The position numbers and the translations under genes are program-made. Positions 28,088 to 49,462 of a DNA stretch of 64,000 nucleotides are shown here, in pieces. Under the pieces are notes generated by a model that saw only the letters and a list, made by a program, of their open reading frames with translations, did no database searches and had not been told where the DNA came from. Position 1 is the stretch's first letter. Each line of letters opens with the position of its first letter. The stretch is taken from sequence record MN871449.1; one strand, 5' to 3'.

Positions 28088-28381
28088 ATGTCCGGAACAA
28101 ATTCTACCGCTGTAAAAAATTTACTTAAAACGATCGAAGAGGACATTGAAAATTTTTTCAAGGAAGACCGTCACTCGGAAGCGGATGCAGTGTATTTTCT
28201 AGAGCAGTTGAATAACCGTATTTTTAGCACCATTTTCACCAAAGAAGAAAAGATAGAATTCGTCGCCATTGCCGCCAGTCATTTCTACAGCCACGGTTTA
28301 ACCCGATACCGTAACAGGACACCAAAAACCCTTTGGGAGAAGATTCGCTTTATTTTTAGTAAGGAGGACATATGGCGTTAG
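28088..28381 (+). CDS. Hypothetical protein
   Basis: GGAG SD before ATG 28088, 97 aa. Confidence 0.6.
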   Translation: MSGTNSTAVKNLLKTIEEDIENFFKEDRHSEADAVYFLEQLNNRIFSTIFTKEEKIEFVAIAASHFYSHGLTRYRNRTPKTLWEKIRFIFSKEDIWR

Positions 28382-29439
28382 GCGTCAGTAATTACGTTAA
28401 GACCTTAAGTAACTCAGCGCAAACTGCTAAGGCTGCCGCGCAAACCCAAAGCTCATTAGTGGCAACGGGTGTTAAGGATTCGATGGTGGCCGTAGATGGT
28501 TACGGAAAGGAAACGAAAACCGTATTGAGTAACATGAAGAATATGGTTTTAGGGAAACTCGCTGAAACAAAGAATTATCTTTTAAACACCACTATCAGTG
28601 ATTTAGGGTCGTTGAATGACCTGCTCACTCAAGCCAGCGCAGTAAAGAAAGACATCAGCGAATATACCAGTCAGCTGAGTAACGAGATTGGTCAAAGTAT
28701 CAGTACCGTCAAAGGGATCTCTGATGAGGTTATCAATGGTGCTACCAGTACGCTTCAGGAAATTAACAGCACCGTCGATAGTACCTTTAGCGATGTCAAT
28801 GGCGCGGTTACCCAGTTGACCTCTGCCGGAGATATCCTGAACGCGAATAATCTGATCAGTAGTGTTAATACCTTATTGGCCAATGCGGATATGACCTTTC
28901 AGAATTTGGAAGACAAACTGTCGATGACGGCACTGAAATCTTCTATTCTCCAGCAGGCTTCATTTCTCGGACTCTCTAACGTTGTCTCCGCTGTCTACAG
29001 TAGCGATTCCTCTAATCCGACACTGACCGCGGCAATGGGCGACAGTCTACCGACGGTGTTGGCTTCTGGGAACCTGTCAATGGTCAAGGCGATGGTAGAA
29101 AGTTTAGGCGGTGTCTACATCTTACAGAAAGCCCCTGATGCCGTACAACAGATTCTCCAGAACTATCGTTTTGGTAAAGTCATTGACGCGAACCAGTACA
29201 GTACTTACGCGACAGAGTTAGTCTCGGTCTTATCCTCCATTGACCCACGTTGGAATGCTTCGCAGTTCACTCCTACAGGACATCGTCTGAGTGTCTTCCG
29301 GAATATTTCCACCAATGCGAAAACAGTACTGAATACATTACCGGAATACGCTTACCAGATTGCAGTGGTTCAGCACTTTACAGAGAACACTGTGGTTGGA
29401 TTAGCAAAACAACAATACACGTTTATCGCACTTGCATAA
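28372..29439 (+). CDS. Putative virion structural protein (S/T/N-rich helical)
   Basis: 355 aa with AAGGAGG SD. Confidence 0.6.
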   Translation: MALGVSNYVKTLSNSAQTAKAAAQTQSSLVATGVKDSMVAVDGYGKETKTVLSNMKNMVLGKLAETKNYLLNTTISDLGSLNDLLTQASAVKKDISEYTSQLSNEIGQSISTVKGISDEVINGATSTLQEINSTVDSTFSDVNGAVTQLTSAGDILNANNLISSVNTLLANADMTFQNLEDKLSMTALKSSILQQASFLGLSNVVSAVYSSDSSNPTLTAAMGDSLPTVLASGNLSMVKAMVESLGGVYILQKAPDAVQQILQNYRFGKVIDANQYSTYATELVSVLSSIDPRWNASQFTPTGHRLSVFRNISTNAKTVLNTLPEYAYQIAVVQHFTENTVVGLAKQQYTFIALA

Positions 29440-35500: not shown

Positions 35501-38500
35501 AACGCTTTCGCACCGCTTATCCAGCGAGGAAGTTCTTTGATCCATTTCCAGAAATTCCCGAATCCGGTTGCAATTTTCCCGACAATGGCACCAACTCCCG
35601 TGATAGCGGCCCAGATCAGTTTACCCCAACCACCCCCTTCCTTCGCCGCTTTCTCAGCGTGTTCAGGTTTGGTCTCTTCCGGTTTCTTTTTCTGAAGACG
35701 CTGCCACCAACTTCCGGTACGATTCTTGAGTTTCTCGAACCCGCCCGTTAAGCGATTCTTGATACCCGAAACACTACCTGTTTCGGTATCGAGGCCGTCA
35801 AGTGGATCTTTCCCGGTGAACTGATTAACTAAGAGTCGATAGATACGTTTTAGCCACGGTGTCGACCCGCCAGAGAATCCTATCCCTGTATTCAAGCCCC
35901 TATTTAAAACACCGCCTACTGCACTCAAACCGTTAGAAGCTAAATTAATCGCACCGTTTTTCAGTCCATTTAAAATCTTAAACGGGGTTGTAAGTAAACC
36001 GCCCACCCCGCGGAGACCGTTGCCGATCATCCCCGTAAGTTTAGCCAGTCCAGTACGAACGCTACGGCCATTCTTATCAACCAATCCTTTAGCAGCATCC
36101 TCAGCAGAAAGTACAGGTGTCATGGTTCTGGTGCGAGGGTCAATCACCCCGACGTCACCGTCAATATCGGAAAGTTTCTTGATGACTTTCCCAGTACGCA
36201 TCGAGAAATATTCCCCATTCGCCAACTTACTGGCGTAGAGACGCGGTTTCATTTCTCCGAGCACGTAAATATCTGGTAAGCGACCGAATAAGGAAAAGAG
36301 ACCTTTCCCTAATCCGCCTGCAGCACCTTTGAGTAAATGATAAGGGGTAAACCTTCCGTTTAATAGACTCCCCACCGCACCGAGTACTTTGTTAAAGGAT
36401 GTCTTAATGCGGTTTCCTGCGGCGTTAAACAAACCCCGTCTCGCTTCGTCGTCGGTCAGGACCTGAGTGTTATTTACCACGTCCCAGACTGCGCCCCGTA
36501 CGTCAGAAAGTTTCTTGATAACCTTCCCGGTGGCTTGGTCAACGTAACGACCCGCTGCCAGTCCTTCTTTTTCAATGACTTTCTTTAAACCCTGTGCCGT
36601 CGCGATATAGCCGTCTTGAACTTTCTCAAACGCCTGCATCCCGAAACCTAAGACTTTATTCAGGCCAAAGGTACCGATCGTCATCGCTGCATTGAAAGCC
36701 GGGCGACGTACTCGCTTAAAGATCTCTCCTGCTGCTTTAAGCGGTAAACCGCCAAGATCCCACATCCCTTTCACACCACGACGAATACCGCCGATACCCG
36801 CACGGAGCCCGCGTTTAGCCCAGTTCCGTGAGAAACGACGACGCCCGCCTTGATCGCCAGTATCACCGCCTTGGCCACCTTGACCACCGCCACCTCCTCC
36901 GTTGAGACAGCACCCTTCCAGCGCGGTAAGCTGTGCCTCTATTCTGGCCATTTGCTCATCCCAGAACAACTGAGAGTGTTTCATGGACTCAAGGATTCTA
37001 TCGGTTTGTTCCGCTAACGCCGTCCCGAAAGAATTTTGTTGGTTCCCGTTAAGATTAAAGTTAACCGAATTCGGGTTGGTCCAATCTTGTCCGAAGCGAC
37101 GGAGTTCAGTGATAGGCGGGGTACCCGGCGGTGGGTTACGAGGACGATGTGGACCCATGTCGTTAGGGTTAGTCGAGTCGTTGTTACCCGGTGAAGGTTT
37201 ACCAGATACGCGTGAACCGTAATAGTCTGGGTTAACTTCCCAATTACCGTTCTTAAAGACCACTGCGCCTTCTGAGATCAGTTCTTCAAGGTTACCGGTT
37301 TGCGCTAACGCATGGGCACGATTAAAGATACCCTGCGTTTGGTTAGAGGCGTAGTTATACTGACCGGCATCGATATTAAGGTTAACGTTTGAAGAAGAGA
37401 ACGGGTTAAGCGACCATTCACTTTTCTCGTTCAGTTTCAGTCCATAACGTTTCGCCATCAGTCCTTGCCAAAGGCGTTGGTCGTCACGGGATAACCCTGA
37501 GATTTTCTCATTAGCTAGGGCTGCCGGGTTAAAGGCTTTCGAGGTTCTTGCCCTTGTCATCAGGTGATCAGAAATTTTACCTTTAGCGTCGGGAGATAAC
37601 CGGTTGTTGTTATCGATGTTCTCGATAAGACGATTAATATTCTCACGCTGTGAATTGATATCGGTGTCTTTAATCAACGCCTGACGCGTCGACGCCACCG
37701 ATTCATTAAAGGAGGTAAAAATGCCCTTCTGACGGTTGAAAACCGTGCGCTGCGTGTTATTATCGCCCGTCCTGAGGACGTCGATACTATGTAAGATTCG
37801 GGACAGGTACCCGGACATCTCTTCCATATAGCTGAGTTTACGCTCGTCTACAGTCGAGATTTTTTCTCCGTTCCCCAATCCTCCGGCGCGAACTACGCCT
37901 TCGTCACGGTAACCGCCACGTAAGGTGTCTTTAACAAAGTTCTCGATGGGATTATACCATTTCCCGTAACGGTAACCGGAATTTCCCCAATCTGACGCTA
38001 AACGTTCTTTGTTGTTAAAGAGGTAGTTGACGCCCTGGAATGTACCGTCCAATCGACGTAGCGAAGGCGCACTTTTATTAATGCGTTTTCCGATACGTTT
38101 ACCGATTTGTAACGCACCCCAGTTCCCTGCTGCCCCTGCTAAAAACTCCTCCGGGGTGACACCCATTGACGCCAGTAATTCCCGTTGCGCCTCGAGCTGT
38201 TCGAGAGAATCGTTGGCCATTGAAAAACCCATAGTGAGTTTTTGCATTCTGTCGTTAATGGCTTGTTTCGCACGGTCTTTGAACTGGTTACGATAATTAC
38301 TCGTCCAGTCGTACATTGACTGTTGGATGCGACCAAAGATTTTCTCACGGCCCATCCGAAGGAATTCTTCCGAACGGTGCTGTTTTACTACGTCAGGTAA
38401 CGCGGTGTTTTCGACAACGCTTCTGAGCAGGTTGGAGGTTTCAACCGCAGACTTCTGTGCCACGTCTAAATGGGCACGCGAAACCATCAGCTGTCGAATT

Positions 38501-39159
38501 TGAAGCTCCATACTTTTCTTTTGAAATGCACGCTGTGCACCAAACTGATAAGCGGTCTGCTTCGCCAGGAGATTCTGGATACTCGCAATGGCCGTACCCA
38601 GTTTTATTTTATACTGCTGATCGGTCAGTTTCTCAGTCAGTTCCTCAGGGCTCATCTGCTTCGGTTTGTCATCGTCTTGATTGAAGACTTGAGCTAACGA
38701 CTGGAGTACCGCTGCGTCTTCAATATTGAGCGCTGCCAGTTGAGAACCTGATTTATCTGTCCCGTTGTTTCTCGTCAGAAACGCATCGATCTTTTTCTGA
38801 TACGGTGTAGGAACAAGACGGTTGACGGTACGACCCAACGCTTTCATTTCTCGCAGCATCGGGGCGGCATCTTTACGGACGTCAGCGTAAAGCGATCGAA
38901 CGTCGATTAAACCTTTATCAACGTTATCTAAGGTTGTAGTGAAAGAACGCGGCATGGCCTCTTTCAGGATGGTTTTCGCCATCTGACTGGTAAAGGTCGT
39001 TTTCCCCATCTCACGGAGAACGGTCTTTCCTGCCTTTTTTACAGCCTCGCGTTTACCGCTTCCGTCTTTCGCACTTTGAGGTTCTTTGTCCATGCCCCAA
39101 TTATCTTCGAGATCAAAATCGTCAAAACGATCCAGATCTATTTTTTCTCTTTTGGCCAT
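32566..39159 (-). CDS. Tail tape-measure protein with a C-terminal lytic transglycosylase (phiKZ gp181-like)
   Basis: 2197 aa, helical and repetitive. SLT motifs AAMVAQESRF, SSAAGLGQFLDGTW and IYMAHFLGPGGA. Confidence 0.9.
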   Translation of the reverse strand: MAKREKIDLDRFDDFDLEDNWGMDKEPQSAKDGSGKREAVKKAGKTVLREMGKTTFTSQMAKTILKEAMPRSFTTTLDNVDKGLIDVRSLYADVRKDAAPMLREMKALGRTVNRLVPTPYQKKIDAFLTRNNGTDKSGSQLAALNIEDAAVLQSLAQVFNQDDDKPKQMSPEELTEKLTDQQYKIKLGTAIASIQNLLAKQTAYQFGAQRAFQKKSMELQIRQLMVSRAHLDVAQKSAVETSNLLRSVVENTALPDVVKQHRSEEFLRMGREKIFGRIQQSMYDWTSNYRNQFKDRAKQAINDRMQKLTMGFSMANDSLEQLEAQRELLASMGVTPEEFLAGAAGNWGALQIGKRIGKRINKSAPSLRRLDGTFQGVNYLFNNKERLASDWGNSGYRYGKWYNPIENFVKDTLRGGYRDEGVVRAGGLGNGEKISTVDERKLSYMEEMSGYLSRILHSIDVLRTGDNNTQRTVFNRQKGIFTSFNESVASTRQALIKDTDINSQRENINRLIENIDNNNRLSPDAKGKISDHLMTRARTSKAFNPAALANEKISGLSRDDQRLWQGLMAKRYGLKLNEKSEWSLNPFSSSNVNLNIDAGQYNYASNQTQGIFNRAHALAQTGNLEELISEGAVVFKNGNWEVNPDYYGSRVSGKPSPGNNDSTNPNDMGPHRPRNPPPGTPPITELRRFGQDWTNPNSVNFNLNGNQQNSFGTALAEQTDRILESMKHSQLFWDEQMARIEAQLTALEGCCLNGGGGGGQGGQGGDTGDQGGRRRFSRNWAKRGLRAGIGGIRRGVKGMWDLGGLPLKAAGEIFKRVRRPAFNAAMTIGTFGLNKVLGFGMQAFEKVQDGYIATAQGLKKVIEKEGLAAGRYVDQATGKVIKKLSDVRGAVWDVVNNTQVLTDDEARRGLFNAAGNRIKTSFNKVLGAVGSLLNGRFTPYHLLKGAAGGLGKGLFSLFGRLPDIYVLGEMKPRLYASKLANGEYFSMRTGKVIKKLSDIDGDVGVIDPRTRTMTPVLSAEDAAKGLVDKNGRSVRTGLAKLTGMIGNGLRGVGGLLTTPFKILNGLKNGAINLASNGLSAVGGVLNRGLNTGIGFSGGSTPWLKRIYRLLVNQFTGKDPLDGLDTETGSVSGIKNRLTGGFEKLKNRTGSWWQRLQKKKPEETKPEHAEKAAKEGGGWGKLIWAAITGVGAIVGKIATGFGNFWKWIKELPRWISGAKALDAAGDLAGDVAGSGGRRGGLLRRTGNVLKKVGKGALGVAGFLGRGLFSGVGMLARGAAVAAGSLLSAPVLVTAAVAAGVGYLIYKGYQAYKNRMTSLRNYRAAQYGVNPKDSDRAGKVLALEEAVLKNSQISGQGKLKIGSLPFQELLSAFDVEITDQRSVQRWTRWYQMRFVPVFTRNVETLYRMDPKAKITESEFLKPSQRGDFAKATFIASGGKESPYLVSDSPFPNMSSVTGDRFVAGFRDQVIAEFAEAEKKAIASGEKKLVTASDVKQPKGIELLNKKAQEAQANNANRTVNPTTDLYYSPGDTRKGLTSLTGDKRKDELIEMGNRIDDLTSIRVKLYGLRELLKGDVNALLALETEALKFIRYGDKGVALWTGNSEQFFANWNGQFGINSNNANEKAQWLFWFTKRFLPVFLNFCSESNFIAPNSSPMVAWKKLNASDLLKIANFMNSATTEVNGGKVSVWTIKASPWPNRFSNTDSSVIQSNLDALRLEGKKEVYQEKVKTEAEIAKMTFDGKALRNSSLGNKIADLYSDNRALTADTRGRATGANGVGVYGQRVGSMGTSFERSEAGSSFTDTNLLHSGEGTGGSINDIPDPKGDGWDNVKDSIAAVAKMVGVDAGSLAAMVAQESRFEIRAKNGNSSAAGLGQFLDGTWKEILPTLVKKYGVNPNTSQYDPRASLLATAEYMKQNAKIIGDIGRPLTTTDIYMAHFLGPGGARNVLRVPTNTPIQSAMGDRYAAVARANPEIFKNVRTTGDLVASLGGYLSRNGGQYAQLANGMTGKAGPAVPGGGSDAVSTSAPKETETTPPVAPSTGSNTIVSNPAKGEMPVGSTTSTSVTTRGTDTVTPATTRTTDSRDAKALAQQAVQRENTAEANRIAVAASRKQSAETASTTSTWADTLNEQLETQKSMDSTLKLIKGLLEKGVPVTGGENNSSPKTNPNSSELRGKDISTGSRGKQPFEPFDTSISQNFR

Positions 39160-39203
39160 TTTGTTCCCTTAAAAGGTTAATCGTCTGTTAACAGGATTAG
39201 ACA

Positions 39204-40835
39204 ATGCGTACTAACGATATCCCATTCAATATCTTCCTCATGGATTTAACCCCTCAACTGATACGGAGTATGCGACCGACCAGTACGACCGAGATCTTTG
39301 AAACCGGTACCCGTAATTTCCATAAGGACGGTTTATTCTCAGTAGAAACATTCGGTCCCTTAGGTTCACCTGAACGCGATGGGCGTTTCAGTTATATCGA
39401 ACTCCATACCCGTGTTTTTCACCCGCTCGTTTATAAACGACTCGGTTCATTAAAACGTCTTTATTTGGATATTCTGGAAGGGCGACGTTATGCCGTCTTT
39501 AACACAGAAACCTTCGATTTCGAACCCAGCAACGAAATGGAGGGCGAAACCGGCTTCTCCTTTTTTGTACGTCATTTCCCCGATTTGAAATTAGAAGAAG
39601 GCGATTCCGAACTCCGTAATCTCCGCGTGAAGCTCATCAACAAAAATAAAGACAAAGCGCTGACTGATAAAGTCCTGGTCATGCCGGCAGGTCTGCGTGA
39701 TCTGATGGTAGAAACCTCAGGGCGTACGAGTGAAGACGAAATCAACAAATTCTATCGTTCTATCATCTCAATCTCCAACAGTCTGGAGATGGGTCGTGAG
39801 CCTTCTGAAGACCCTTTAATCAATAACAGTCGTTTACAATTACAACGACAGTTCAACGAGATATTCGAAAGTATCTTTAACATGATTAAAGGAAAGAAAG
39901 GTTTTGCGGCTGCGAAATGGGCGTCACGTAAAATCATTAACGGTACAGCAAACGTTATTTCGCCAATGAAGATCACAGGGACTCGGATCGGTGAAACGAA
40001 TACGCCAGGGATCAACCACGTTCAGTTAGGGCTCTACCAGACCATCAAAGCGGTCCTGCCTAAGACACGCTATTTCTTACGCTCAGGTTGGCTAGGTGAA
40101 GTTTTCTCGGGTAACAGCGAAGATGAAATCCGTTTGACGAACCCCAAAACTCTCCGTGCTGAATACGTACAGCCCTCCCCGGAGGCCGTTGAACGTTGGA
40201 CAACCCGTGACGGTTTAGATGCCCAGATCACCCGCTATAAAACCCCGGCTTTCAGAAATAAACCAATTTTAATAGACGGTTATTACTTAGGACTGCTCTA
40301 TTGGGGTGAAGAAGGGTTCCGGTTCTTCGCTGATATCAACGAACTCCCAGCGGGTTTTGATAAGCGGTTTGTTAGCCCGATTAACATGACCTCGCTTTAT
40401 TACCTGTCCGGGTATCGTGAATGGGGTAAGTTAGCAGGCGTAGTGACTCGTTACCCTGTTACAGGACAAGGGTCGACTTTCATAGCAAACATTTACTGCA
40501 AACCGACTATTGTTTCTAGCGTAAAAGCTGAACTCGGCCACGACTGGCGGAGACTGGGTGACGATTTCATTTGTTTCGAATTCCCTGATCAAAGCAAATC
40601 GGTAGAGTACGTTAACTCTATGGGGATAGGCGTCAGCTATCTCTCTCCATTGGGTGCCGACTTCGATGGCGACCGTTGTACCTTTACAGCGATCTATGCC
40701 TCGGATTCTATTGCTGAATACGAAATGCTAAAAGGTCGTAAAGAATGGTTCCTCTCTTCCCGCGGTACTCTCTCTAAGAGCGCGGATGTTGATAACGTAC
40801 AATTAGTCTTACGTAACATTACTGGTGAAGCTTAA
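39204..40835 (+). CDS. rpoC: Virion RNA polymerase beta' subunit, N-terminal/catalytic part (phiKZ gp180-like)
   Basis: GLFSVETFGP, FSYIEL, LVMPAGLRD, KGKKG and catalytic LGADFDGD. Confidence 0.92.
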   Translation: MRTNDIPFNIFLMDLTPQLIRSMRPTSTTEIFETGTRNFHKDGLFSVETFGPLGSPERDGRFSYIELHTRVFHPLVYKRLGSLKRLYLDILEGRRYAVFNTETFDFEPSNEMEGETGFSFFVRHFPDLKLEEGDSELRNLRVKLINKNKDKALTDKVLVMPAGLRDLMVETSGRTSEDEINKFYRSIISISNSLEMGREPSEDPLINNSRLQLQRQFNEIFESIFNMIKGKKGFAAAKWASRKIINGTANVISPMKITGTRIGETNTPGINHVQLGLYQTIKAVLPKTRYFLRSGWLGEVFSGNSEDEIRLTNPKTLRAEYVQPSPEAVERWTTRDGLDAQITRYKTPAFRNKPILIDGYYLGLLYWGEEGFRFFADINELPAGFDKRFVSPINMTSLYYLSGYREWGKLAGVVTRYPVTGQGSTFIANIYCKPTIVSSVKAELGHDWRRLGDDFICFEFPDQSKSVEYVNSMGIGVSYLSPLGADFDGDRCTFTAIYASDSIAEYEMLKGRKEWFLSSRGTLSKSADVDNVQLVLRNITGEA

Positions 40836-40850: not shown

Positions 40851-43800
40851 ATGAGTAATATTCAATACCAGCAATTTTACATGTCCTACGGGACACGTAA
40901 TAAAACGCGACTGGCTAACCCAAGAGCGTTCAATGTCGAGAACTTTATTCTCCCTAAGAATAGCATCGTCCATTATCTTCCCAGTAATGCCACTGACTTA
41001 GGTCCTGACGAGACGTTCTTCGCAATCCAAAAAGAAAGACTACGTCCCTACGCCGATAACATTACGGAAATGACACTCTTTAACGGCAGTCCTCGTCGGA
41101 AAGGAGCGTTCAATGTTGCTAACCTAAAACGGACGTGGTTGCAAAAGCGCCGTGGTTTCCGTCGGGTTACCGATATCGCCAGAGCATTAGACGACCGTAA
41201 CGCTGCGATTGTCGCCAACTACTCGCTCATCCCCATGCAGTGGCGTTACCTGCCGTTACCGATGGCCCGATTCTGGCGTTTCCAAAACCTGCTCGCTACG
41301 TTATACGGACAGGCTAAGTTCTACGCTGAACATTCTGACCGCCATCAGTTTATTCTGGTCAATGTCCCGGATGAACTCCCAACGAAGATGCAGTTAAACA
41401 TTTCAGTTGAGGATGCGGGTATCCCTATCCTCAATGCGTATCAGAATCAGCTCCGAGCACGTCCCGTTGCCCTCTCGTACGCAGATGTCTTCGATCTCCA
41501 TATGCCAGGGTTATCGAGTGAGTTACCGGCTGACGTGGCGCGAGAGGCATTTGATGAGTCAGCGCTGGGCTTTGAAAGCGACGACAGTTTCATTGCGGCG
41601 TCCGGTGTTTCACTGGAAGAGATGAATCGTATTCGTCTCGGGTATTTCCAGAATGACGATGCGCTCTTTATTCAAGACCTCTGGCAGTGGCTTGCTGAGA
41701 AACGGGAAAACTCGCTGTTGAACATGATCCCGGTCGAACATTACAGCAAGATTAATTTCGTCTTTATGCGAATGGGGAAATTCACGGTTCTGAATCTGGG
41801 CCTGCTTCACCAATGGACCAAATCAGAAACTAACCCGAAAGGCGATGCTTACGCACAGATCTCCCGATTGATGCTACAACACATCACTGCGCTGAAATTG
41901 CTGACCGGTGTGCAGGAACAGGTCACCATCGAAGAAACTATCCCGGATGAGAATACCGGGGAAAGTGAAATCCTCGAGATCACCGGTGACGCGGAAGAAA
42001 CGGTTGTGGTGGAAACAACGGAAACAGAAACCCAAGAAAACAACCCAGAAGAACCTGTCGTTAAAACCACCACAGTCAAAGCGCTCAGGGAAAAGATTAA
42101 CCAAGGGAAACCCGGTCTTCGTACGCAGTTAGTTGATGCCTTTAAGAGCGTCACTGAGGAGATTGAGACCACTGAACCGCCTCGCGCTGTTCGTCTGGTT
42201 GCTGCCCCTGACATTGACGCAGAGGTCATTATCGACCCACCGCAAGAAGCGGTTCAGGAATCGCCTTTGGTTTCAGGGATTCGAACCCAAGCAGAATCGC
42301 TCCTGAGTAAAGGGCTGATTAGCAATGCCGAGTACAAGCGTCATCTTCGTTTGGCCGAAAGTTACAAGGTTATTCCTTCCCCGTTCAACGAAAGCGTTTC
42401 GCTGGAAGACTACCGACAGATCCCGAAAGAAGTCGTCTGGAATTTTGAACCGAAGGTCATCGAGGATATTACCCACGTCAAAGATAAAAGCATGTTAAAA
42501 AGTACCTTGATCGACTTCGATCAAAAGTACGTTAAAGAAGTCATGCAAAAGGACGTGATCAATTTAATCCTTAATTTCCAGAAAGCCGGGTTTGCCATTA
42601 CCGACTTTAAAGTGGAACGCCAAGTCGATGCGTTAAATGACCTTTACGATTACACGGTGAAAATCTCGCCGGTTAAAGGCGCGCCTTCTACGGTTCGTTT
42701 CCAGTTACCGGTCATCGATAAAAATGGGAAATATAAAATCGGTGGGATTAAATACTTCATGCGCAAATTGCGTTTTGATAAACCCATCCGTAAGATCTCT
42801 CCATCGACCGTAGCGCTGTCCACGTATTACGGCAAGCTGTTTGTCGACCGCAGCGATAAACGTCGTTACGATTACGGAGAGTGGCTTAAAGATGCCATGA
42901 ACCGCGCGGCGTTAACTAACCCGCCGATCATGACGGAAATTGTTTACGGTAACTCGTTCAAAGATTCCCAACCGGTGCCCAGAACCTATTCGGCTATCGC
43001 CAAAGAGGTCATCTCGTTTGAGGCAGTGGGCATACAGTTTATTTTCGACTACGAGAACATCAAGAAAAATTTCCCGGATTGGAATGGAACAACGGATATC
43101 CCAGTAGGAAAACGCGGGAAAACTACGGTCACGATGGATAAAGAGGGTTACCTGCGCGCCGGTGCTGACAACCTCGGGCATATCGCAAAACTCCTTGGAG
43201 CTAACCCAGATGACCGTCCGAATGAATTGGTGACAATCTCTATCTTAGGACAAGAGTTCCCGTTAGCCATTGTATTGGCTTATCTGGAAGGATTCAGTCA
43301 GATGGTAGAAGGGTTAGAGATTCAGCCGGAACGGAGAACGAAAGGGGCGCGTGTACAACCCGACCCGAATACCTTCGAGATCGTCTTTGCCGATGAGATC
43401 TGGCGTATCCCAAGAAAGACACACCCTGATGTCTTGATCTACGCTTCGTTGCTTCTGTGGAAGGCTGCCCTGAAAAACTATTCTGTTGCAGAACTGGACA
43501 ATCGGGACAACTACAACGCACTGCTTTCTGACATGCAGTTATCAGGACGCTATCTCTACGAGTTCACTAACCTTAATGCAATCTTTATCGACCCGATCGC
43601 AGAAGAGAACCTGGAGATGATGAACGAACCCACCACGTTCATCCCGCTGTTGAAGAAAGCCGCCTTTTACTTGGCGACCGATGAATACCCGAGTGACCTG
43701 AGTTCAGAGGGCTCGTTATTCAAAGGTTACGAGCGTATGGCAGGAGCGGTCTACCGTACCTTCTCAGAAGCCGTCCGGAGACAATCTTCCAGTAACCTCA

Positions 43801-45338
43801 GTTCAAGGGCGTCTTTGGATTTCCCACCGTTCGAGGTATTGTCCGCGATACAGAAAGATCCCTCTGTTTCTCTGGTAGAAGATTCTAACCCTATCCAAAA
43901 CCTGAAAGAGAAAGAGAACCTGACTTATTCCGGTACTGGCGGCCGCGGTAAGCGTTCCATGACGAGACGTACCCGTGCGTTCCATCCGAGTGATATTGGT
44001 ATTCGTTCTGAATCCTCGGTGGATAACGGCGACGTTGGGATTAACTGCTTCCTGTCAGCGAACCCTAACCTCACCAGTTTACGTGGTACAGCACGGACTG
44101 AGAAAGACCTGAGTAAAGAGAAAGGGTTTAGTAATATCCTTTCTACTAGCGCATTGGTATCACCCTTTGCGACTTATGACGACCCGAAGCGCGTTAACTT
44201 TATCGGTATTCAGAGTAGCCACAAAATAAGCAGTGTAGGAGATGACCTCGGTTATATCCGCACGGGTTACGAGTTAATGATGGCCCACCGTAATGATGAT
44301 CTTTTCGCTGCCAGCGCAAAAGGTCAGGGCGTGGTAACAGAGAAAGGAAAGAATTACGTTGTCGTGAAATACGATGATCCCGCGCTCGGTGAAGACCGTA
44401 TCGAGATCGGACGTAAGTTCGGTATCGTGACAGGTCATACCGTCCCGCATGAGATGCGTTGTGATCTGGAAGTCGGTGCGAGCGTGAAGAAGGATACCAT
44501 TATCGCTTACCATCCGGGGTTCTTTGCGAAAGACTGGCGTGAGCCAGGTCAGGTCGCGTTCAAGAACGGGATCACCACAAACATCGCGTTGATGGAAAAC
44601 AACAACACCTTCGAAGACGCCAGTCTGATTTCAGAACGGCTCTCTAAGAAGATGGCGACGTTGGTGACGCATACCCGTGTCCTGATGGTGAACTTTAATC
44701 AGGCAATCCGTAATTTGGTGAGCGAAGGACAACACGTTGACATCGACGACACCCTCGCGTTTATCGAAGACGAAATCTCAGCGAACTTTGATTACTTTGA
44801 TGCCAGTTCTATGGAAACCTTAGCGCGACTCGGTAACCCAGCCCCTCGTGCAAAACACGTAGGAACGGTTGAGAAGATTGAGGTGTTCTATTTCGGTGAG
44901 AAAGAGGACATGTCGGATTCGGTTCGTAAGGTGGCGGATAAATACGACGCGATTCGTGCGAAAAACGTCAAGGTACTCAAGCAAGAAACGAGTCCGACCG
45001 GACAGGTCTTCACGCCGAGCCGGATCGACGGTTTGCCGTTAGAGATTGATATGATGGCGATTCGTATTTATATCACGCATCAGCGTGGTATGGGGGACGG
45101 CGATAAACTGGTGGTGGGTAACCAGAAGAAGTCGGTGGTAAGTGGTGTGTATAACGGTATTTGCCGTACACGTAACCCTGTACTGCCTGGCGGAGAACCG
45201 TGGGACATCGACCTTCAGTTCTCGTATCGCGCGATCAACGCACGTATCGTAAACTCCGCATTACTCCTTGGGATGGGTAACGTTCTTATTGAAAACATTC
45301 AGCAGGAGATGCTGAAAGCCTACGATAATGAACAGTAA
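40851..45338 (+). CDS. rpoB: Virion RNA polymerase beta subunit, N-terminal part (phiKZ gp178-like)
   Basis: 1495 aa with DPKRVNFIGIQSSH, FEDASLISE and GDGDKLVVGNQKKSVV motifs. Confidence 0.9.
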   Translation: MSNIQYQQFYMSYGTRNKTRLANPRAFNVENFILPKNSIVHYLPSNATDLGPDETFFAIQKERLRPYADNITEMTLFNGSPRRKGAFNVANLKRTWLQKRRGFRRVTDIARALDDRNAAIVANYSLIPMQWRYLPLPMARFWRFQNLLATLYGQAKFYAEHSDRHQFILVNVPDELPTKMQLNISVEDAGIPILNAYQNQLRARPVALSYADVFDLHMPGLSSELPADVAREAFDESALGFESDDSFIAASGVSLEEMNRIRLGYFQNDDALFIQDLWQWLAEKRENSLLNMIPVEHYSKINFVFMRMGKFTVLNLGLLHQWTKSETNPKGDAYAQISRLMLQHITALKLLTGVQEQVTIEETIPDENTGESEILEITGDAEETVVVETTETETQENNPEEPVVKTTTVKALREKINQGKPGLRTQLVDAFKSVTEEIETTEPPRAVRLVAAPDIDAEVIIDPPQEAVQESPLVSGIRTQAESLLSKGLISNAEYKRHLRLAESYKVIPSPFNESVSLEDYRQIPKEVVWNFEPKVIEDITHVKDKSMLKSTLIDFDQKYVKEVMQKDVINLILNFQKAGFAITDFKVERQVDALNDLYDYTVKISPVKGAPSTVRFQLPVIDKNGKYKIGGIKYFMRKLRFDKPIRKISPSTVALSTYYGKLFVDRSDKRRYDYGEWLKDAMNRAALTNPPIMTEIVYGNSFKDSQPVPRTYSAIAKEVISFEAVGIQFIFDYENIKKNFPDWNGTTDIPVGKRGKTTVTMDKEGYLRAGADNLGHIAKLLGANPDDRPNELVTISILGQEFPLAIVLAYLEGFSQMVEGLEIQPERRTKGARVQPDPNTFEIVFADEIWRIPRKTHPDVLIYASLLLWKAALKNYSVAELDNRDNYNALLSDMQLSGRYLYEFTNLNAIFIDPIAEENLEMMNEPTTFIPLLKKAAFYLATDEYPSDLSSEGSLFKGYERMAGAVYRTFSEAVRRQSSSNLSSRASLDFPPFEVLSAIQKDPSVSLVEDSNPIQNLKEKENLTYSGTGGRGKRSMTRRTRAFHPSDIGIRSESSVDNGDVGINCFLSANPNLTSLRGTARTEKDLSKEKGFSNILSTSALVSPFATYDDPKRVNFIGIQSSHKISSVGDDLGYIRTGYELMMAHRNDDLFAASAKGQGVVTEKGKNYVVVKYDDPALGEDRIEIGRKFGIVTGHTVPHEMRCDLEVGASVKKDTIIAYHPGFFAKDWREPGQVAFKNGITTNIALMENNNTFEDASLISERLSKKMATLVTHTRVLMVNFNQAIRNLVSEGQHVDIDDTLAFIEDEISANFDYFDASSMETLARLGNPAPRAKHVGTVEKIEVFYFGEKEDMSDSVRKVADKYDAIRAKNVKVLKQETSPTGQVFTPSRIDGLPLEIDMMAIRIYITHQRGMGDGDKLVVGNQKKSVVSGVYNGICRTRNPVLPGGEPWDIDLQFSYRAINARIVNSALLLGMGNVLIENIQQEMLKAYDNEQ

Positions 45339-45413: not shown

Positions 45414-45605
45414 ATGAATAACGAAGGTTTACAGGAAATTGCGCAGACTAGCGTCGCCAATATTCTCGAAGTAGGGCGTCGCATTATGCTTGATGCCCGT
45501 AGCGAAGACCTCAGAATCCCCGATGGCGCTAACATCGAAGAAGACCTGGCCGCCGCCATTGGTGCTGCCATCGCCGCGCGTCGTGTTCAAGAGGGGATCG
45601 TGTAA
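45414..45605 (+). CDS. Small hypothetical (head/vRNAP-associated) protein
   Basis: 63 aa, TAATG coupling to the next gene. Confidence 0.65.
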   Translation: MNNEGLQEIAQTSVANILEVGRRIMLDARSEDLRIPDGANIEEDLAAAIGAAIAARRVQEGIV

Positions 45606-47137
45606 TGTTAAATAAAAAATCTATCGCCTTGGCGAAAACGGTCGTCAGTAATGAAGGACTGTTTCTTTTCCCGCGCACCGGTAGCGTGATGTTTAGTCCG
45701 GTGGCCGAATCTTTACCGCTCTTCCAGAGCCATAAACCGTCCATGGAGAACTACGACGCGGTGTTGTTCAACAACGCCCAGCGTACCATTGGGATGGCGG
45801 AACCGCACGAAGGAGCGGTGGCCGGTGCAGCAGAGGTAGTCGGCGGAGCGTTACTGCGTCAGATCGGGTATGTCCGTAACACCGTTGTTCCGTTGATCAG
45901 CGACGTTACCGGGAAGATCCTCGATCGCATGAAGGGTGTGGAACCGAAAGAGTTCACCATCACTCAATACGACCCGTCGCCGATCATCTACAACCCGTAC
46001 GTCATCGATACGTTCGGTCAGTACAAACCGAATGCGCCGCTGTTTACCCGAATCAAAAATGCCCCGGAAAAAACTGACGTCGATCTGATTGACGGAATGA
46101 AGACCGGTGTGAGCGAACTGGACGACGGGTTAGCGGATGCTATTGCGAAATACGGCGCCGATACCGTTGTTGCAATCTACAACGTCCTCTTCCGTAACGA
46201 GACGGTTGTACCGGTTTGTCCGGTGACCCGGTTCATTGCTGGTTTAGTGCAGCAGAAAGAAGGCCAGCGTTGTGTTGGTACCTTTACCGATGCGTCAATG
46301 ACTGATCTGGGTATTATTACCTATTTCCTGATTGACAGCTTTAGTCAAGACCCGCTGCCGGGTACCGGGTTAACCTTACCGGAATTCAACGCGACGATCA
46401 ACGCGATGAAACTCCAGTACGGCTACCTGATTCAGAACGGCCTGGGTTGGCTCAGCGGTTGCAGTCGTCGTGGACAGCTGGTGATTCGCTTCACCGGTAA
46501 AAGTCAGATTGCAACGACCTCAGAAGACGCAGAGATCGTTGTATTCGGCCCGGTCTACCGTCAGGGGCTCAGCCAGGGTTTAACCCCGGAGAGCGTGATT
46601 GGCGGCGTTCTAGACCCGAAAGGCGGTCAGCGTTTACTGACCCAGTTCCTGTCCAATAATGAACTGAACCTTAAACGCTGGCAGGCACTCGAAGTGCAAC
46701 GTCAACGTTATTCGCGCGACACGTTCCTTAAACGCCTATCTAACTGTTTCGTACCGGAACTTTCAGCAGCGCTGGGTGAACTGAACGATGACCAACTCCC
46801 GGGTGGCTTCAGTAAAGAAGAAGCGATGGCACGGGTGATTGAAGATCTCAAGTCCGGTAAGTTTTACGTTAACTGGAACATTGACAACGACCCGAACCTG
46901 TTCGAGTTAGTCAAACAGAAAGTCTGCCAGCACATCTTCACCTTTATCGATGCCGAGGACATTATCGACATCGTGGAAACGGAGATGCAAGAGAATCAGG
47001 AAGACGGGACTACCGCAGCCTATACCGCCGCGGTACGTTACCTGGCGAAATGGTTAGTGGCCAACTTTGACGTCCTGAGTTTCAGTGCAGCGGAAAAGAT
47101 CGGTATCATCGAAGCGGATGATGTTACGGTAGCTTAA
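45605..47137 (+). CDS. Conserved virion head protein (phiKZ gp177 / SPN3US gp243-like)
   Basis: 510 aa, located between betaN and the protease, with N-terminal SNE and SME sites. Confidence 0.6.
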   Translation: MLNKKSIALAKTVVSNEGLFLFPRTGSVMFSPVAESLPLFQSHKPSMENYDAVLFNNAQRTIGMAEPHEGAVAGAAEVVGGALLRQIGYVRNTVVPLISDVTGKILDRMKGVEPKEFTITQYDPSPIIYNPYVIDTFGQYKPNAPLFTRIKNAPEKTDVDLIDGMKTGVSELDDGLADAIAKYGADTVVAIYNVLFRNETVVPVCPVTRFIAGLVQQKEGQRCVGTFTDASMTDLGIITYFLIDSFSQDPLPGTGLTLPEFNATINAMKLQYGYLIQNGLGWLSGCSRRGQLVIRFTGKSQIATTSEDAEIVVFGPVYRQGLSQGLTPESVIGGVLDPKGGQRLLTQFLSNNELNLKRWQALEVQRQRYSRDTFLKRLSNCFVPELSAALGELNDDQLPGGFSKEEAMARVIEDLKSGKFYVNWNIDNDPNLFELVKQKVCQHIFTFIDAEDIIDIVETEMQENQEDGTTAAYTAAVRYLAKWLVANFDVLSFSAAEKIGIIEADDVTVA

Positions 47138-47148
47138 AGGAGTCGAGT

Positions 47149-47874
47149 GTGGATATCGCTCAGTGGAAACATAAACCTGATGCGATGAAAGCGACGTTAC
47201 GTGAACTCCCAAACGGCAGTCTGGTCACTACGACCGGCTGCCGGATTGTGATCCAAGAGTCCTTTCGCGCAAAACAATTGATCAGTATGGGTAAGCGTAT
47301 TATGATCATCGGCTTCTTTGCGATCTGTAACGAAGCGGGTGAATACGCAGTTTCAACCACACCCAGTATGATGGAAATCGCCCCGGCTGAAATTCGTCAG
47401 TTAGAGTACCAAGGTCGGAGCTATTACGACTTCCATTTTACTCCCGGTAGTACCGTGATCAAAAACTTGAACCTGGTCAAAGACAACACCCTTCTTTATT
47501 ACCTGTTTGAAGAGATTCTGGCCCGAGGAAGAATCCCATTCTTCTACAACTATATCTCGCTCAGCGGGTTCTTTGAAGAAACGAAAAAATACACCGGTAC
47601 GCAATTGGTGGCGACCCCGACCATCGGCGAGATGATTATCGCACAGATTGCGCGTTTATCGCATGACCGTAAAGTCCCACTTCGTGAGAAACTCTTCAGC
47701 TACAACGAACTCAAAACAACGCCGTTCACGTGGATTCCGTTACGTAACGTAATTGATGGTTCGTCTGATACCACAGCGAAGATCTCAGGGAGCTACACTG
47801 GCGATGGCTTGGATTCGGCGATTGTGAACCCTAACGAAGTCACGCAGCCGATTGAACGACTCTTGAGGGCGTAA
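47149..47874 (+). CDS. Probable virion RNA polymerase beta' C-terminal subunit (phiKZ gp176 / SPN3US gp244-like)
   Basis: GTG start after AAGGAG. The C-terminus WIPLRNV...TTAKISGSY..DGL.SAIVNP...IERLLR fits the beta' C-terminus, and synteny agrees. Confidence 0.6.
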   Translation: MDIAQWKHKPDAMKATLRELPNGSLVTTTGCRIVIQESFRAKQLISMGKRIMIIGFFAICNEAGEYAVSTTPSMMEIAPAEIRQLEYQGRSYYDFHFTPGSTVIKNLNLVKDNTLLYYLFEEILARGRIPFFYNYISLSGFFEETKKYTGTQLVATPTIGEMIIAQIARLSHDRKVPLREKLFSYNELKTTPFTWIPLRNVIDGSSDTTAKISGSYTGDGLDSAIVNPNEVTQPIERLLRA

Positions 47875-47876
47875 GT

Positions 47877-48602
47877 ATGTCACCATTTGAACGGTTAACT
47901 GCTTTCGTCCGTAAACAGCAAGAGCACGCCATCAACGCCTTACAGGTCGATACGCACCACCGCGTCCTTTATCATATCTCGCCTAATCCAAAGATCGACG
48001 TTTTCGTTCCGCGTGAAATTCAACGGACGATGGCGGGAGAAGATGAAAGTGTGAAACGGGTTTGTACCGGAATCACTGTGGTGGATTGTCTGCGAGGATA
48101 CGGTGTCGCGTTACGGGACTTTCTCGACAGTAAAGCCCACTGCGCGGGTGATGACACATGGCTCGGTGGCTATACGATCTACGCCATTGATGTAGAGGGT
48201 TCTTTGCGACCAGGGAAATCTATCTGCCCGATGGCAGAGTGGTCAGAAGAACGTTGGTTAGTGAATGTCGATCAGGAAGACCAACCCTACCCAGCGCGGG
48301 TCGTCGGGAAGTGTTTTATCGACGAACTTCGTTTGATCAAAGATGACTACCAGAAAAGTATTGAAACCCGAATCCTCATTGAGGTGACGGGTCCGTCCTT
48401 AAAGTTCTCGCCGTTCTTTTCGTTGAAACGCGGGTATTATCAGATGGTGCTCCCTGCGCTAGAACGGTACAAAGAAGAGCCGTTCGACCAAAGCCAAGTT
48501 GAGATGTTCCCGTTATCGAAGACAGAATTCAACGCTGCCAAGGAACGCAAGGCGGGACTGCTTTCGTATGAGTCGAGTTTCTCTAATATTGTACGATGGT
48601 GA
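47877..48602 (+). CDS. Putative ADP-ribosyltransferase-fold protein
   Basis: LYHIS...FVPR...ED...RVC....DCLRGY...YTIYAI...SEERWL follows the H...(Y)...E-x-W order of ART-like folds. Confidence 0.45.
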   Translation: MSPFERLTAFVRKQQEHAINALQVDTHHRVLYHISPNPKIDVFVPREIQRTMAGEDESVKRVCTGITVVDCLRGYGVALRDFLDSKAHCAGDDTWLGGYTIYAIDVEGSLRPGKSICPMAEWSEERWLVNVDQEDQPYPARVVGKCFIDELRLIKDDYQKSIETRILIEVTGPSLKFSPFFSLKRGYYQMVLPALERYKEEPFDQSQVEMFPLSKTEFNAAKERKAGLLSYESSFSNIVRW

Positions 48603-48606
48603 AATC

Positions 48607-49353
48607 ATGGGAATGTCATTTGAAGTAACGGCGCTGAAAGGAGTGAACCGGGTCGGTAACATTAAACGCCTCGATAATAACTACCTGGAAGTTATCCTGG
48701 GTGCGTTAGAGTTTGATAACAGCATCGGGGCAGTTTATGACCAGCAGCGTGTAGAACGTATCCTCGCTGCAAACGGCTTGTTCCAGAAGCGGATTAACGA
48801 AGGGTATTTGCGTGGTGAGTGGGGTCATCCAAAAGAGTATGACTACCCTGACTACCGTAAGTTCATTCAGCGCATCCACACGATTGATGAGCGGAACTGG
48901 GCGATCCATATCCGTAAAGTTTGGGTAGTACCGAACTTCGTGTTACCGAATGGTCAGCGCATTTGCGCGATCATGGGCGAAGTCTGTTCTACTGGTGCAC
49001 GTCGTGATGACTTTGATAAAATCATGGCTAACCCGGACGAGAATCTGGCCTTCAGTATTCGCAGCATGGCGACCGACAGAGTCGTGGGCGGGAAGGTACG
49101 TAAGTACGTTGATAACATCATCACCTGGGATCTCGTTAACGAACCGGGTCTTTCTGTTGCGAACAAATACATGTCGCCGTCTTGCGAATCGGCGTTGGTG
49201 GTTCCGGTTCAACCGGCAATCATTCGTAGTATGGCGGAAGATAAAAGTCTGGTTTCGGTAGAGTCCAGTTTTAAAGGGACGATTGATGCGATTCGTAACT
49301 TAGATCGCGCTACCTTACTTTCCGGGAAAAGTGGTCTGGTTGCACGTTGGTAA
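48607..49353 (+). CDS. Prohead (head maturation) serine protease (T4 gp21 / phiKZ gp175-like)
   Basis: LRGEWGHP (His), AFSIRS (Ser), ITWDLVNEPG (Asp), and C-terminal S-x-E sites SCE and SVE. Confidence 0.9.
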   Translation: MGMSFEVTALKGVNRVGNIKRLDNNYLEVILGALEFDNSIGAVYDQQRVERILAANGLFQKRINEGYLRGEWGHPKEYDYPDYRKFIQRIHTIDERNWAIHIRKVWVVPNFVLPNGQRICAIMGEVCSTGARRDDFDKIMANPDENLAFSIRSMATDRVVGGKVRKYVDNIITWDLVNEPGLSVANKYMSPSCESALVVPVQPAIIRSMAEDKSLVSVESSFKGTIDAIRNLDRATLLSGKSGLVARW

Positions 49354-49358
49354 ATAGA

Positions 49359-49382
49359 AAAGAGAGGCGTTGGCCTCTCTTT
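49359..49382 (+). terminator. Terminator hairpin
   Basis: AAAGAGAGGC-GTTG-GCCTCTCTTT followed by a T-rich tail. Confidence 0.8.
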
Positions 49383-49462
49383 CTTTTATTTTCTTAGTTT
49401 TATGATAATACTTAAAATCTGATTTAATTTAAGAGACACTTATTACGAAGAGAGGATTTATC

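Follow-up and report, generated by a model that had tools for sequence, protein, structure and literature searches.

The gene at positions 47877-48602 of a 64,000-nucleotide stretch of sequence record MN871449.1 (the whole stretch is here called the window) encodes a protein of 241 amino acids (aa), the target of our analysis, which lies in a block of virion genes directly ahead of the prohead protease. The window is that of a Klebsiella jumbo phage that encodes chimallin and falls into the KpLz-2_45/phiKp24 group: it is 99-100% identical to Klebsiella phage KpLz-2_45 and relatives and shares ~80% protein identity with phiKp24/FBKp24, and the target itself is 100% identical in KpLz-2_45 and 81% identical in phiKp24. 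A sequence-only reading had suggested that it may be a packaged, processed and injected ADP-ribosyltransferase (ART) of a nucleus-forming phage. The latter label is fair, since a gene for a chimallin homologue is present in KpLz-2_45 (E 3e-11 to phiKZ gp54); genome-wide checks were made on the RefSeq record of this near-identical phage (296.7 kb). As outlined below, the target is most likely a conserved capsid-internal protein of chimallin-type jumbo phages and probably a head-packaged enzyme with an ART fold and a C-terminal targeting tail. The genes and features of the locus are:

40851..45338, plus strand: 1495-aa virion RNA polymerase beta-type subunit, which opens the gene block (open reading frame, ORF; annotation of positional counterparts)
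45414..47137, plus strand: 63-aa and 510-aa genes (510-aa protein: phrog_3841, E 2e-60; synteny)
47149..47874, plus strand: 241-aa virion protein gene (phrog_2926, E 7e-76; conserved synteny)
47877..48602, plus strand: target gene, ATG start, TGA stop, 241 aa, 27.7 kDa, phrog_5043 family
47952..48401, plus strand: ART-superfamily-like domain of the target, residues ~26-175 (AlphaFold model, VIA-align matches)
48288..48515, plus strand: long beta-hairpin sheet of the target, residues ~138-213 (secondary structure of the model)
48519..48599, plus strand: C-terminal helix and tail of the target, residues 215-241
48564..48572, plus strand: S230-Y-E232, candidate cleavage motif for the S80 protease (sequence; S/A/G-x-E with Leu at P4 and Ser at P1')
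48607..49353, plus strand: prohead maturation protease, Peptidase_S80, 248 aa (Pfam PF20034, E 4e-62; phrog_3014, E 4e-69)
49255..49263, plus strand: S217-V-E219 in the protease, candidate autocleavage site ahead of its tail (E219 invariant; analogy to SPN3US gp245)
49306..49350, plus strand: protease C-terminal tail R-A-T-L-L-S-G-K-S-G-L-V-A-R-W (BLAST register with the tail of the target)
49359..49382, plus strand: terminator-like hairpin, a 10-bp stem followed by a T-run, 6 nt past the protease stop

The target is packed as tightly between the beta'C candidate and the prohead protease as had been noticed before: its ATG lies 2 nt past the stop of the upstream 241-aa gene (47149-47874), and the ATG of the protease gene, at 48607, lies 4 nt beyond its TGA. 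Because a terminator is present only 3' of the protease, the genes from 40851 through the protease read as one block. Where the two genes meet (window 48595-48609), the TGG TGA that ends the target, its last codon and stop, shares letters with the GGTGA that serves the protease gene as a Shine-Dalgarno-like sequence, and the GGTGAAATCATG junction is also present in RAY; this suggests a conserved translational coupling of target and protease genes. Paralogy of the target with either neighbour, the protease or the upstream 241-aa gene, was considered and dismissed, as BLAST similarity was confined to the tail, in the pair with the protease.

The idea of an ART fold rests on structure prediction. 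The AlphaFold model of the target, made with a 100-sequence alignment, has a pLDDT (predicted local distance difference test) of 91.9 and a pTM (predicted template modelling score) of 0.87 and is uncertain solely over the last ~20 residues (pLDDT 42-69). In a VIA-align search of 48,161 representative chains the first six rows, and the majority of the top rows overall, belonged to the ART superfamily, with TreX at Z 6.2, a Tpt1-type enzyme at 5.4, CARDS toxin and Scabin at 5.2 and pertussis S1 at 5.1; further matches were ParT, AvrPphF, NatT, RES, MbcT, LT, Arr (4.5), diphtheria toxin, DarT and Tne2. The matches cover residues ~26-175 of the model. In a second look all 29 top rows belonged to the ART superfamily, the best being TreTu with Z 6.4 and a root-mean-square deviation of 3.0 Å over 102 residues, and a second model, of a family member with 31% identity (pLDDT 92.7), gave the same ART pattern (Scabin 5.5, Tpt1 5.3, TreX 5.1, pertussis S1 5.0, Arr 4.9). 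Since the Z-scores of the ART superfamily across these looks (4.5-6.4) stay below the level of 8 that is regarded as safe for VIA-align, weight is put on the uniformity of the matches, on their replication and on the fit of the conserved residues. With near-exclusive ART matches at the top for two models, at modest Z, the fold that had been proposed from sequence is supported, and it is quite likely that residues ~26-175 adopt it. In the ESM Atlas all 30 nearest named clusters were Arr-ms, the Arr-type rifampin ADP-ribosyltransferases (score 0.94), sharing 157-166 language-model features, which is under the 170 typical of true members; this pointer to Arr is a lead, not proof. The first strands of the long hairpin sheet (residues ~138-213) complete the ART-like core in the model, and the rest (residues ~176-213) forms an extra beta-hairpin subdomain; the sheet region gave only generic beta-sheet or CYTH-like matches (Z ~4 over ~50-80 residues).

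The motifs occur in the order listed in the sequence-only reading, LYHIS (31-35), FVPR (43-46), ED..RVC (55-63), YTIYAI (99-104), SEERWL (123-128) and VVGK (142-145). How far they are kept was judged from an alignment of 100 sequences that share 19-80% identity with the window protein, to which all conservation figures for the family refer. Near-invariant are H33, S35, P45, R50, E55, D56, R61, G74, G98, Y102, P112, E125, W127, F147, G186, K222, L229 and W241, with individual values of 98% for H33, 90% for S35, 100% for P45, 91% for R50, 99% for E55 and R61, and 100% for E125 and W127. H33 is located on the first core strand (30-35) and is His in 98 of the 100 members and Arg in the other two; Arg is the alternative first-strand residue in the R-S-E clade of ARTs. 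E125 starts the strand 125-128 and is followed by the invariant W127, a Leu and a Val. Of the earlier assignment of a His strand, a central aromatic and a late acidic residue, the His and the late Glu thus stand (98% and 100%), but not the central aromatic: the strand 61-65 reads R-V-C-T-G, and across the family position 63 is C (59%), S (24%) or T (10%), position 64 T or V, and position 65 A, S or G. Y99 (58%) and Y102 (89%) could supply an aromatic residue from the next strand.

Judged by the offsets of the alignment ranges, H33 would lie opposite R7 of LT/CT, R9 of pertussis S1 and H19 of Arr. E125, at the start of a late core strand, would be equivalent in position to the catalytic Glu of ARTs. 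H33 and E125 are thus predicted to stand where the catalytic His/Arg and Glu of ART enzymes would lie. An ART fold with an invariant His and Glu at the positions that bind and activate NAD+ makes it most likely, as far as the model goes, that the target is an NAD+-using transferase or an NAD+-processing enzyme. That it has a working NAD+-dependent active site is, on the same basis, somewhat favoured over the opposite.

The family is large. Clustered at 50% identity, the matches of a profile search amount to 481 clusters at E ≤ 1e-3, of which 410 reach E ≤ 1e-10, and most members have 230-260 aa. Its sole library entry is PHROG 5043, function unknown, which the target matches with E 9.3e-37 over residues 6-198 (phrog_5043). 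There was no meaningful match of the family in Pfam, NCBIfam or PADLOC, the hits to DUF7205 (E 0.069) and FolD models (E 0.05-0.19) in these scans being far below their cut-offs, and no match of the target in the PDB by sequence or profile search. Gene contexts vary: some members, such as P0132 and P0036, stand beside an S80 protease gene, others near a phiKZ-type capsid gene or elsewhere. Some members carry a fused GNAT acetyltransferase, nucleotidyltransferase or N-terminal region of ~850 aa, and stand-alone paralogues of 150-190 aa that consist of the ART-like domain alone occur in phiKZ, RAY and unrelated phages. With their GNAT and nucleotidyltransferase domains, the first two kinds of fusion are reminiscent of the multi-enzyme proteins packaged in virions that have been described for phages.

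Some of these relatives deserve mention in their own right. A metagenomic fusion of 1059 aa (L015:5001-8180) with a C-terminal ART-like domain and a weak SUKH-like match in its N-terminal part occupies the same slot upstream of an S80 protease, and a 596-aa GNAT + ART-like and a 528-aa nucleotidyltransferase + ART-like protein (L016:5001-6791 among the contigs) both retain the ...LLS...W tail. In phiKZ (NC_004629.1, ~256.5-257.5 kb; L013:961-1968) two small ORFs of 154 aa and 175 aa are neighbours; the former has a YHIS...GED...R-I-C core (E 4e-7 to the family profile) and the latter an LYHGS...YLYATS pattern that is more canonical than that of its neighbour. Both may be stand-alone ART-like domains. 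RAY encodes a 187-aa paralogue (L014:1312-1875) similar to these small ORFs.

Apart from its domain, the target is characterized by its end. The target terminates in ...AGLLSYESSFSNIVRW and the protease in ...SLVSVESSF...RATLLSGKSGLVARW. The sequence-only reading had paired the SxESSF strings of the two proteins, but the better BLAST register aligns the extreme ends, A-x-LLS...RW to A-x-LLS...RW. The SSF identity in both tails is probably due to chance, because it is already gone in the 81%-identical protein of phiKp24; what is left of the proposed mirror image, the shared A-x-LLS...RW end, is real. In the family the tail is flexible and follows the pattern K...A-x-L-L-S-x-(E/D)...W-COOH, with K222 conserved in 92%, A226 in 84%, L229 in 96%, S230 in 82% and W241 in 97%. 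Trp is the exact C-terminal residue in 84 of the 100 members and lies within the last four residues in 95. The S80 proteases show the same feature, with an exact C-terminal Trp in 36 of 45 and a Trp within the last four residues in 42 of 45; W248 of the window protease is conserved in at least 90% of these 45, and E194 and E219, both in S-x-E sites upstream of the tail, are invariant. When the protease tails were compared to a position-specific matrix of the target tail, none of 2000 self-shuffles reached the observed score. Not all relatives conform: the terminal Trp is absent from phiKZ gp175. That the tail might be a tag used widely among virion proteins was considered and rejected, since among the ORFs of the window and of the whole KpLz-2_45 genome only target and protease have an LLS...RW end; an exact terminal Trp is found in only a handful of the 777 long ORFs of this genome. 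In multi-domain fusions the tail is kept at the extreme C-terminus (P0093, P0117, P0130).

What such a tail may do is indicated by the S80 protease of SPN3US. In published experiments the protease without its last 26 residues was catalytically active and was not incorporated into proheads, from which the authors concluded that its C-terminus carries a packaging signal. The earlier suggestion that the tail of the target is a capsid-targeting signal agrees with these data and with the family-wide C-terminal Trp. As target and protease share a Trp-terminated tail, it is probable, by analogy, that the target is loaded into the capsid by the route of the protease.

The strongest evidence that the family is capsid-internal is the location of a homologue, SPN3US gp246. 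The relationship is clear from profile comparison (hhalign probability 99.0, E 3.7e-18 over 171 columns; HMMER E 6.5e-18). By published mass spectrometry gp246 is a head protein of unassigned function; both purified virions and the heads of 255(am107), a mutant in a tail gene, gave it the score 'Head'. In the comparison of wild-type with 255(am107) heads, its two sample sets yielded 322 and 366 spectra at a coverage of 73-87%. At the level of the family, this lends experimental weight to the packaging proposed for the target. SPN3US gp246 and the target are homologous over ~170 residues, the His, ED..PR-I-C and E-x-W are kept, and both genes adjoin that of the S80 protease (gp245 in SPN3US). 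Unlike the target, gp246 is encoded downstream of the protease, has 209 aa, has no LLS...W tail and is reported to be uncleaved.

This leads to the question of cleavage. According to the SPN3US papers the protease recognizes S/A/G-x-E, and gp245 itself is cut at AQE-203, which removes its C-terminal propeptide. LLSYE232/S in the target fits this rule, with a hydrophobic residue at P4 and Ser at P1', and lies in the low-confidence tail of the model; in total the target has six [SAG]xE strings, as compared to 3.6 expected from its composition, so that such a match is weak evidence by itself. In members with Asp at P1 the cognate protease still has Glu at its own site. For the tail-less SPN3US gp246 the published verdict is, as mentioned, that the protease does not cleave it. 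From the sequence, cleavage at SYE232 is plausible in the window phage, not as a trait of the family; it would release a tail of nine residues.

Based on these data, it is tempting to assume the following order of events. The target would be made late, from the same transcript as the virion RNA polymerase subunits and the S80 prohead protease. Its Trp-terminated tail would then probably carry it into the prohead via a receptor shared with the C-terminal propeptide of the protease, which may, in the window phage, clip the tail after LLSYE232 and free the enzyme inside the head. There the enzyme could act on a packaged component, or it could leave the head along with the ejected DNA and be active at an early stage in the infected cell; in Goslar, some high-copy head proteins from the same gene block are packaged yet not injected. 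NAD+ chemistry, tail-mediated loading, cleavage, ejection and the molecule acted upon are the parts of this reading that we infer. The most far-reaching version, in which A-x-L-L-S...W-COOH is a portable prohead-targeting propeptide and an NAD+-dependent enzyme is loaded by the route of the protease, released by proteolysis and ejected with the virion RNA polymerase to modify a component of host or phage in the earliest, vesicle-enclosed stage, is doubtful as a whole.

Several observations weigh against a packaged ART-fold enzyme with a targeting tail. In Pfam, NCBIfam and the PDB neither sequence nor profile searches connect the target with an ART family, the ART matches of VIA-align do not exceed Z 6.4 and thus stay under the safe level, and Foldseek, which the sequence-only reading had named as a check for the ART fold, found nothing in the PDB at E ≤ 0.001 with either model. 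The second-motif position has neither the Tyr of the H-Y-E type nor a clean S-T-S. As to the tail, the absolute match between the two protein families beyond the terminal Trp is weak, LL[SD] being only mildly enriched (13 of 45 proteases as compared to ~12% of background windows); what the two robustly have in common is thus a Trp at the C-terminus, preceded by a flexible segment. The tail is missing in RAY gp169, SPN3US gp246 and Huxley gp258 and, since the tail-less gp246 is nevertheless found in heads, it cannot be the only way in. P1 is Glu in only ~28% of the family and often Asp, Gln or Ser in the others. Finally, in the text of the Goslar study the homologue gp211 (YP_009820908.1) is not mentioned among the virion proteins; the available parts of the papers on RAY, phiKp24 and Goslar make no statement on the target homologues.

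The low structural Z and the non-canonical middle motif would also be expected of a non-catalytic head-core or assembly protein that uses an ART-like scaffold, with the conserved His, Glu and Arg as a binding surface, and helps in the construction or organisation of the prohead core, of the virion RNA polymerase or of the protease. The spectral counts of SPN3US gp246, similar to those of the protease and higher than those of the polymerase subunit gp244, would suit such a role, as would the adjoining genes of the gp243/gp177 class, which code for assembly or structural head proteins. However, precisely the His and Glu positions of ART enzymes are invariant across sequences with 19-80% identity to the window protein, position 33 varies only from His to Arg, the ART-like domain exists as stand-alone paralogues of 150-190 aa in phiKZ, RAY and unrelated phages, and family members are fused to other enzymes. 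We therefore regard a purely structural protein as unlikely. A different catalytic role, the consumption of NAD+ or the processing of ADP-ribose as by RES, MbcT, NatT, Tne2 or Tpt1, by which the phage would counter NAD+-based defences or process RNA ends early, is less likely again. RES, NatT, MbcT, Tne2 and Tpt1 match at the same Z as the toxins, and kptA, pnuC and nadR are present in the same genome, but these chemistries are indistinguishable at such a level of similarity, no match to RES or KptA profiles was obtained and there is no known reason for such an enzyme in a head module.

The frequent position of the target next to the protease gene, on either side, and a tail in which an S/A/G-x-E match is combined with a hydrophobic P4 and a Ser at P1', as in the protease's own site, raise the idea that the target is a partner or regulator of the protease whose A-x-L-L-S-x-E tail sits in the substrate groove as a substrate or pseudo-substrate and delays or localises proteolysis, the ART-like domain being incidental. 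This we consider very improbable, in view of the variable P1 residue, of a conservation that concerns LLS and the terminal Trp, not the scissile position, and of several members that are not beside a protease gene. Hardly credible, and largely refuted by the distribution data, is a likeness of the tails that is coincidental or imposed by the DNA. It is true that the W241 codon and the stop overlap the Shine-Dalgarno-like GGTGA in the window and that SSF is not kept even in phiKp24. But a terminal Trp forced by the overlapping ribosome-binding site was rejected because the Trp persists where no protease gene follows (Noxifer, P0020, P0067, P0148), and it is also kept in the proteases themselves, which precede a terminator; moreover, an exact C-terminal Trp in 84% and 80% of the two families stands against the mentioned handful in KpLz-2_45. 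We thus prefer the packaged ART-fold enzyme with a C-terminal targeting tail.

In RAY (NC_041973.1, ~137506-139017; L010:1480-2991) and its Agricanvirus relatives the homologue gp169 ends right after L-L-S-F, and it is in-frame with the protease gene, with one TAA and six codons in between. Read-through of this stop would yield a fusion that bears the Trp tail of the protease.

Among known systems, the concept of a head-gene-encoded ART-fold enzyme that travels in the capsid and may be trimmed there by the prohead protease is matched by Alt of phage T4, which belongs to the R-S-E clade (Alt/VIP2 family) and, once injected, modifies the host RNA polymerase. Head-packaged ARTs are predicted to be common in myoviruses. 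No sequence similarity of the target to Alt was found: neither Pfam nor PHROG links the two, and an Alt model came up solely at a Foldseek E of 0.13 in a viral library. Alt is of the Arg type, the target has a His on the first strand, and the signal of Alt is N-terminal, in contrast to the putative C-terminal one of the target; the SPN3US papers describe short N-terminal capsid-targeting propeptides for T4 head proteins in general. The target is of a different ART lineage from Alt and has its putative signal at the C-terminus, not the N-terminus. Arr (PF12120) comes closer in that it is a small H-type ART domain, the sole named language-model neighbour and a structural match (Z 4.0-4.9). It differs in the middle Tyr, for which the target has C/S/T, in the acidic Glu of the target, in the extra beta subdomain and tail and in the phage head context, and there was no Pfam match to Arr-ms (PF12120) for the target at E ≤ 1 or for any of 100 relatives at E ≤ 0.1. 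The C-terminal propeptide of the S80 protease (SPN3US gp245, phiKZ gp175 family) resembles the target in its Trp-terminated tail behind an S/A/G-x-E site; the folds are unrelated, and the tail of the target extends ~10-16 residues after LLS, that of the proteases 29-64. A mere analogy is that to the herpesvirus protease, of the same broad class as the S80 proteases, which shares with the scaffold a C-terminal capsid-docking tail that the maturation protease removes by cleavage at the M-site. In herpesviruses the tail is shared via nested in-frame genes and the partner is the scaffold, whereas here the genes are separate and the partner would be enzyme-like.

Chimallin-type jumbo phages have dozens of head proteins of unknown function. 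For a widespread family of 481 clusters, of which at least one member (SPN3US gp246) is in heads, the predicted fold offers a functional proposal, an NAD+-dependent modification, and the short Trp-terminated tail common to target and prohead protease is a candidate for a capsid-loading signal. If true, this signal would explain how protease and cargo enter the prohead core, and it would be a simple tag for loading foreign proteins into the capsids of jumbo phages; GFP-packaging and amber-mutant tools exist for Goslar and SPN3US.

The gene order of the locus is conserved among relatives. Polymerase beta subunit, small protein, ~510-aa protein, ~240-aa protein, target and protease follow each other in phiKp24, Goslar (gp207-212), RAY (gp164-170) and PCH45, and a homologue of the target adjoins the S80 protease gene in the window, phiKp24, Goslar, RAY, PCH45, SPN3US, Huxley and two metagenomic contigs; in SPN3US-like phages it is located directly downstream of the protease, not upstream. 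phiKZ has the same block, with the target missing; a full-length homologue was sought in phiKZ, and only the 154-aa partial paralogue was found, elsewhere in the genome. An RNA polymerase beta subunit is annotated at the same position in KpLz-2_45, phiKp24, Goslar, RAY, phiKZ and SPN3US. The 63-aa and 510-aa genes are positional counterparts of phiKZ gp177.1/gp177, SPN3US gp242/gp243 and Goslar gp208/gp209, and head or virion status is reported in the literature for the ~510-aa protein and its small partner in SPN3US and Goslar. The product of 47149..47874 is the counterpart of phiKZ gp176, SPN3US gp244 and Goslar gp210; published work assigns the latter two as the fifth (beta'-C-terminal) subunit of the virion RNA polymerase. 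The window protease is of the phiKZ gp175/SPN3US gp245 type.

Outside the window, KpLz-2_45 (NC_061418.1) has genes annotated as kptA, a PnuC-type nicotinamide mononucleotide transporter and NadR (28320-28883, 37228-37917, 38062-39273). KptA is an RNA 2'-phosphotransferase and itself an enzyme of the ART superfamily; taken together, the three genes indicate that the phage invests in NAD+ supply and NAD+-dependent RNA chemistry. Metagenomic contigs of diverse origin (food, fermentation, fertilizer, wastewater, gut and plant) contain near-identical copies of the locus (window 45600-49400), which is present in 20 sequencing runs from ~12 studies. Apparently, this group of phages is environmentally widespread.

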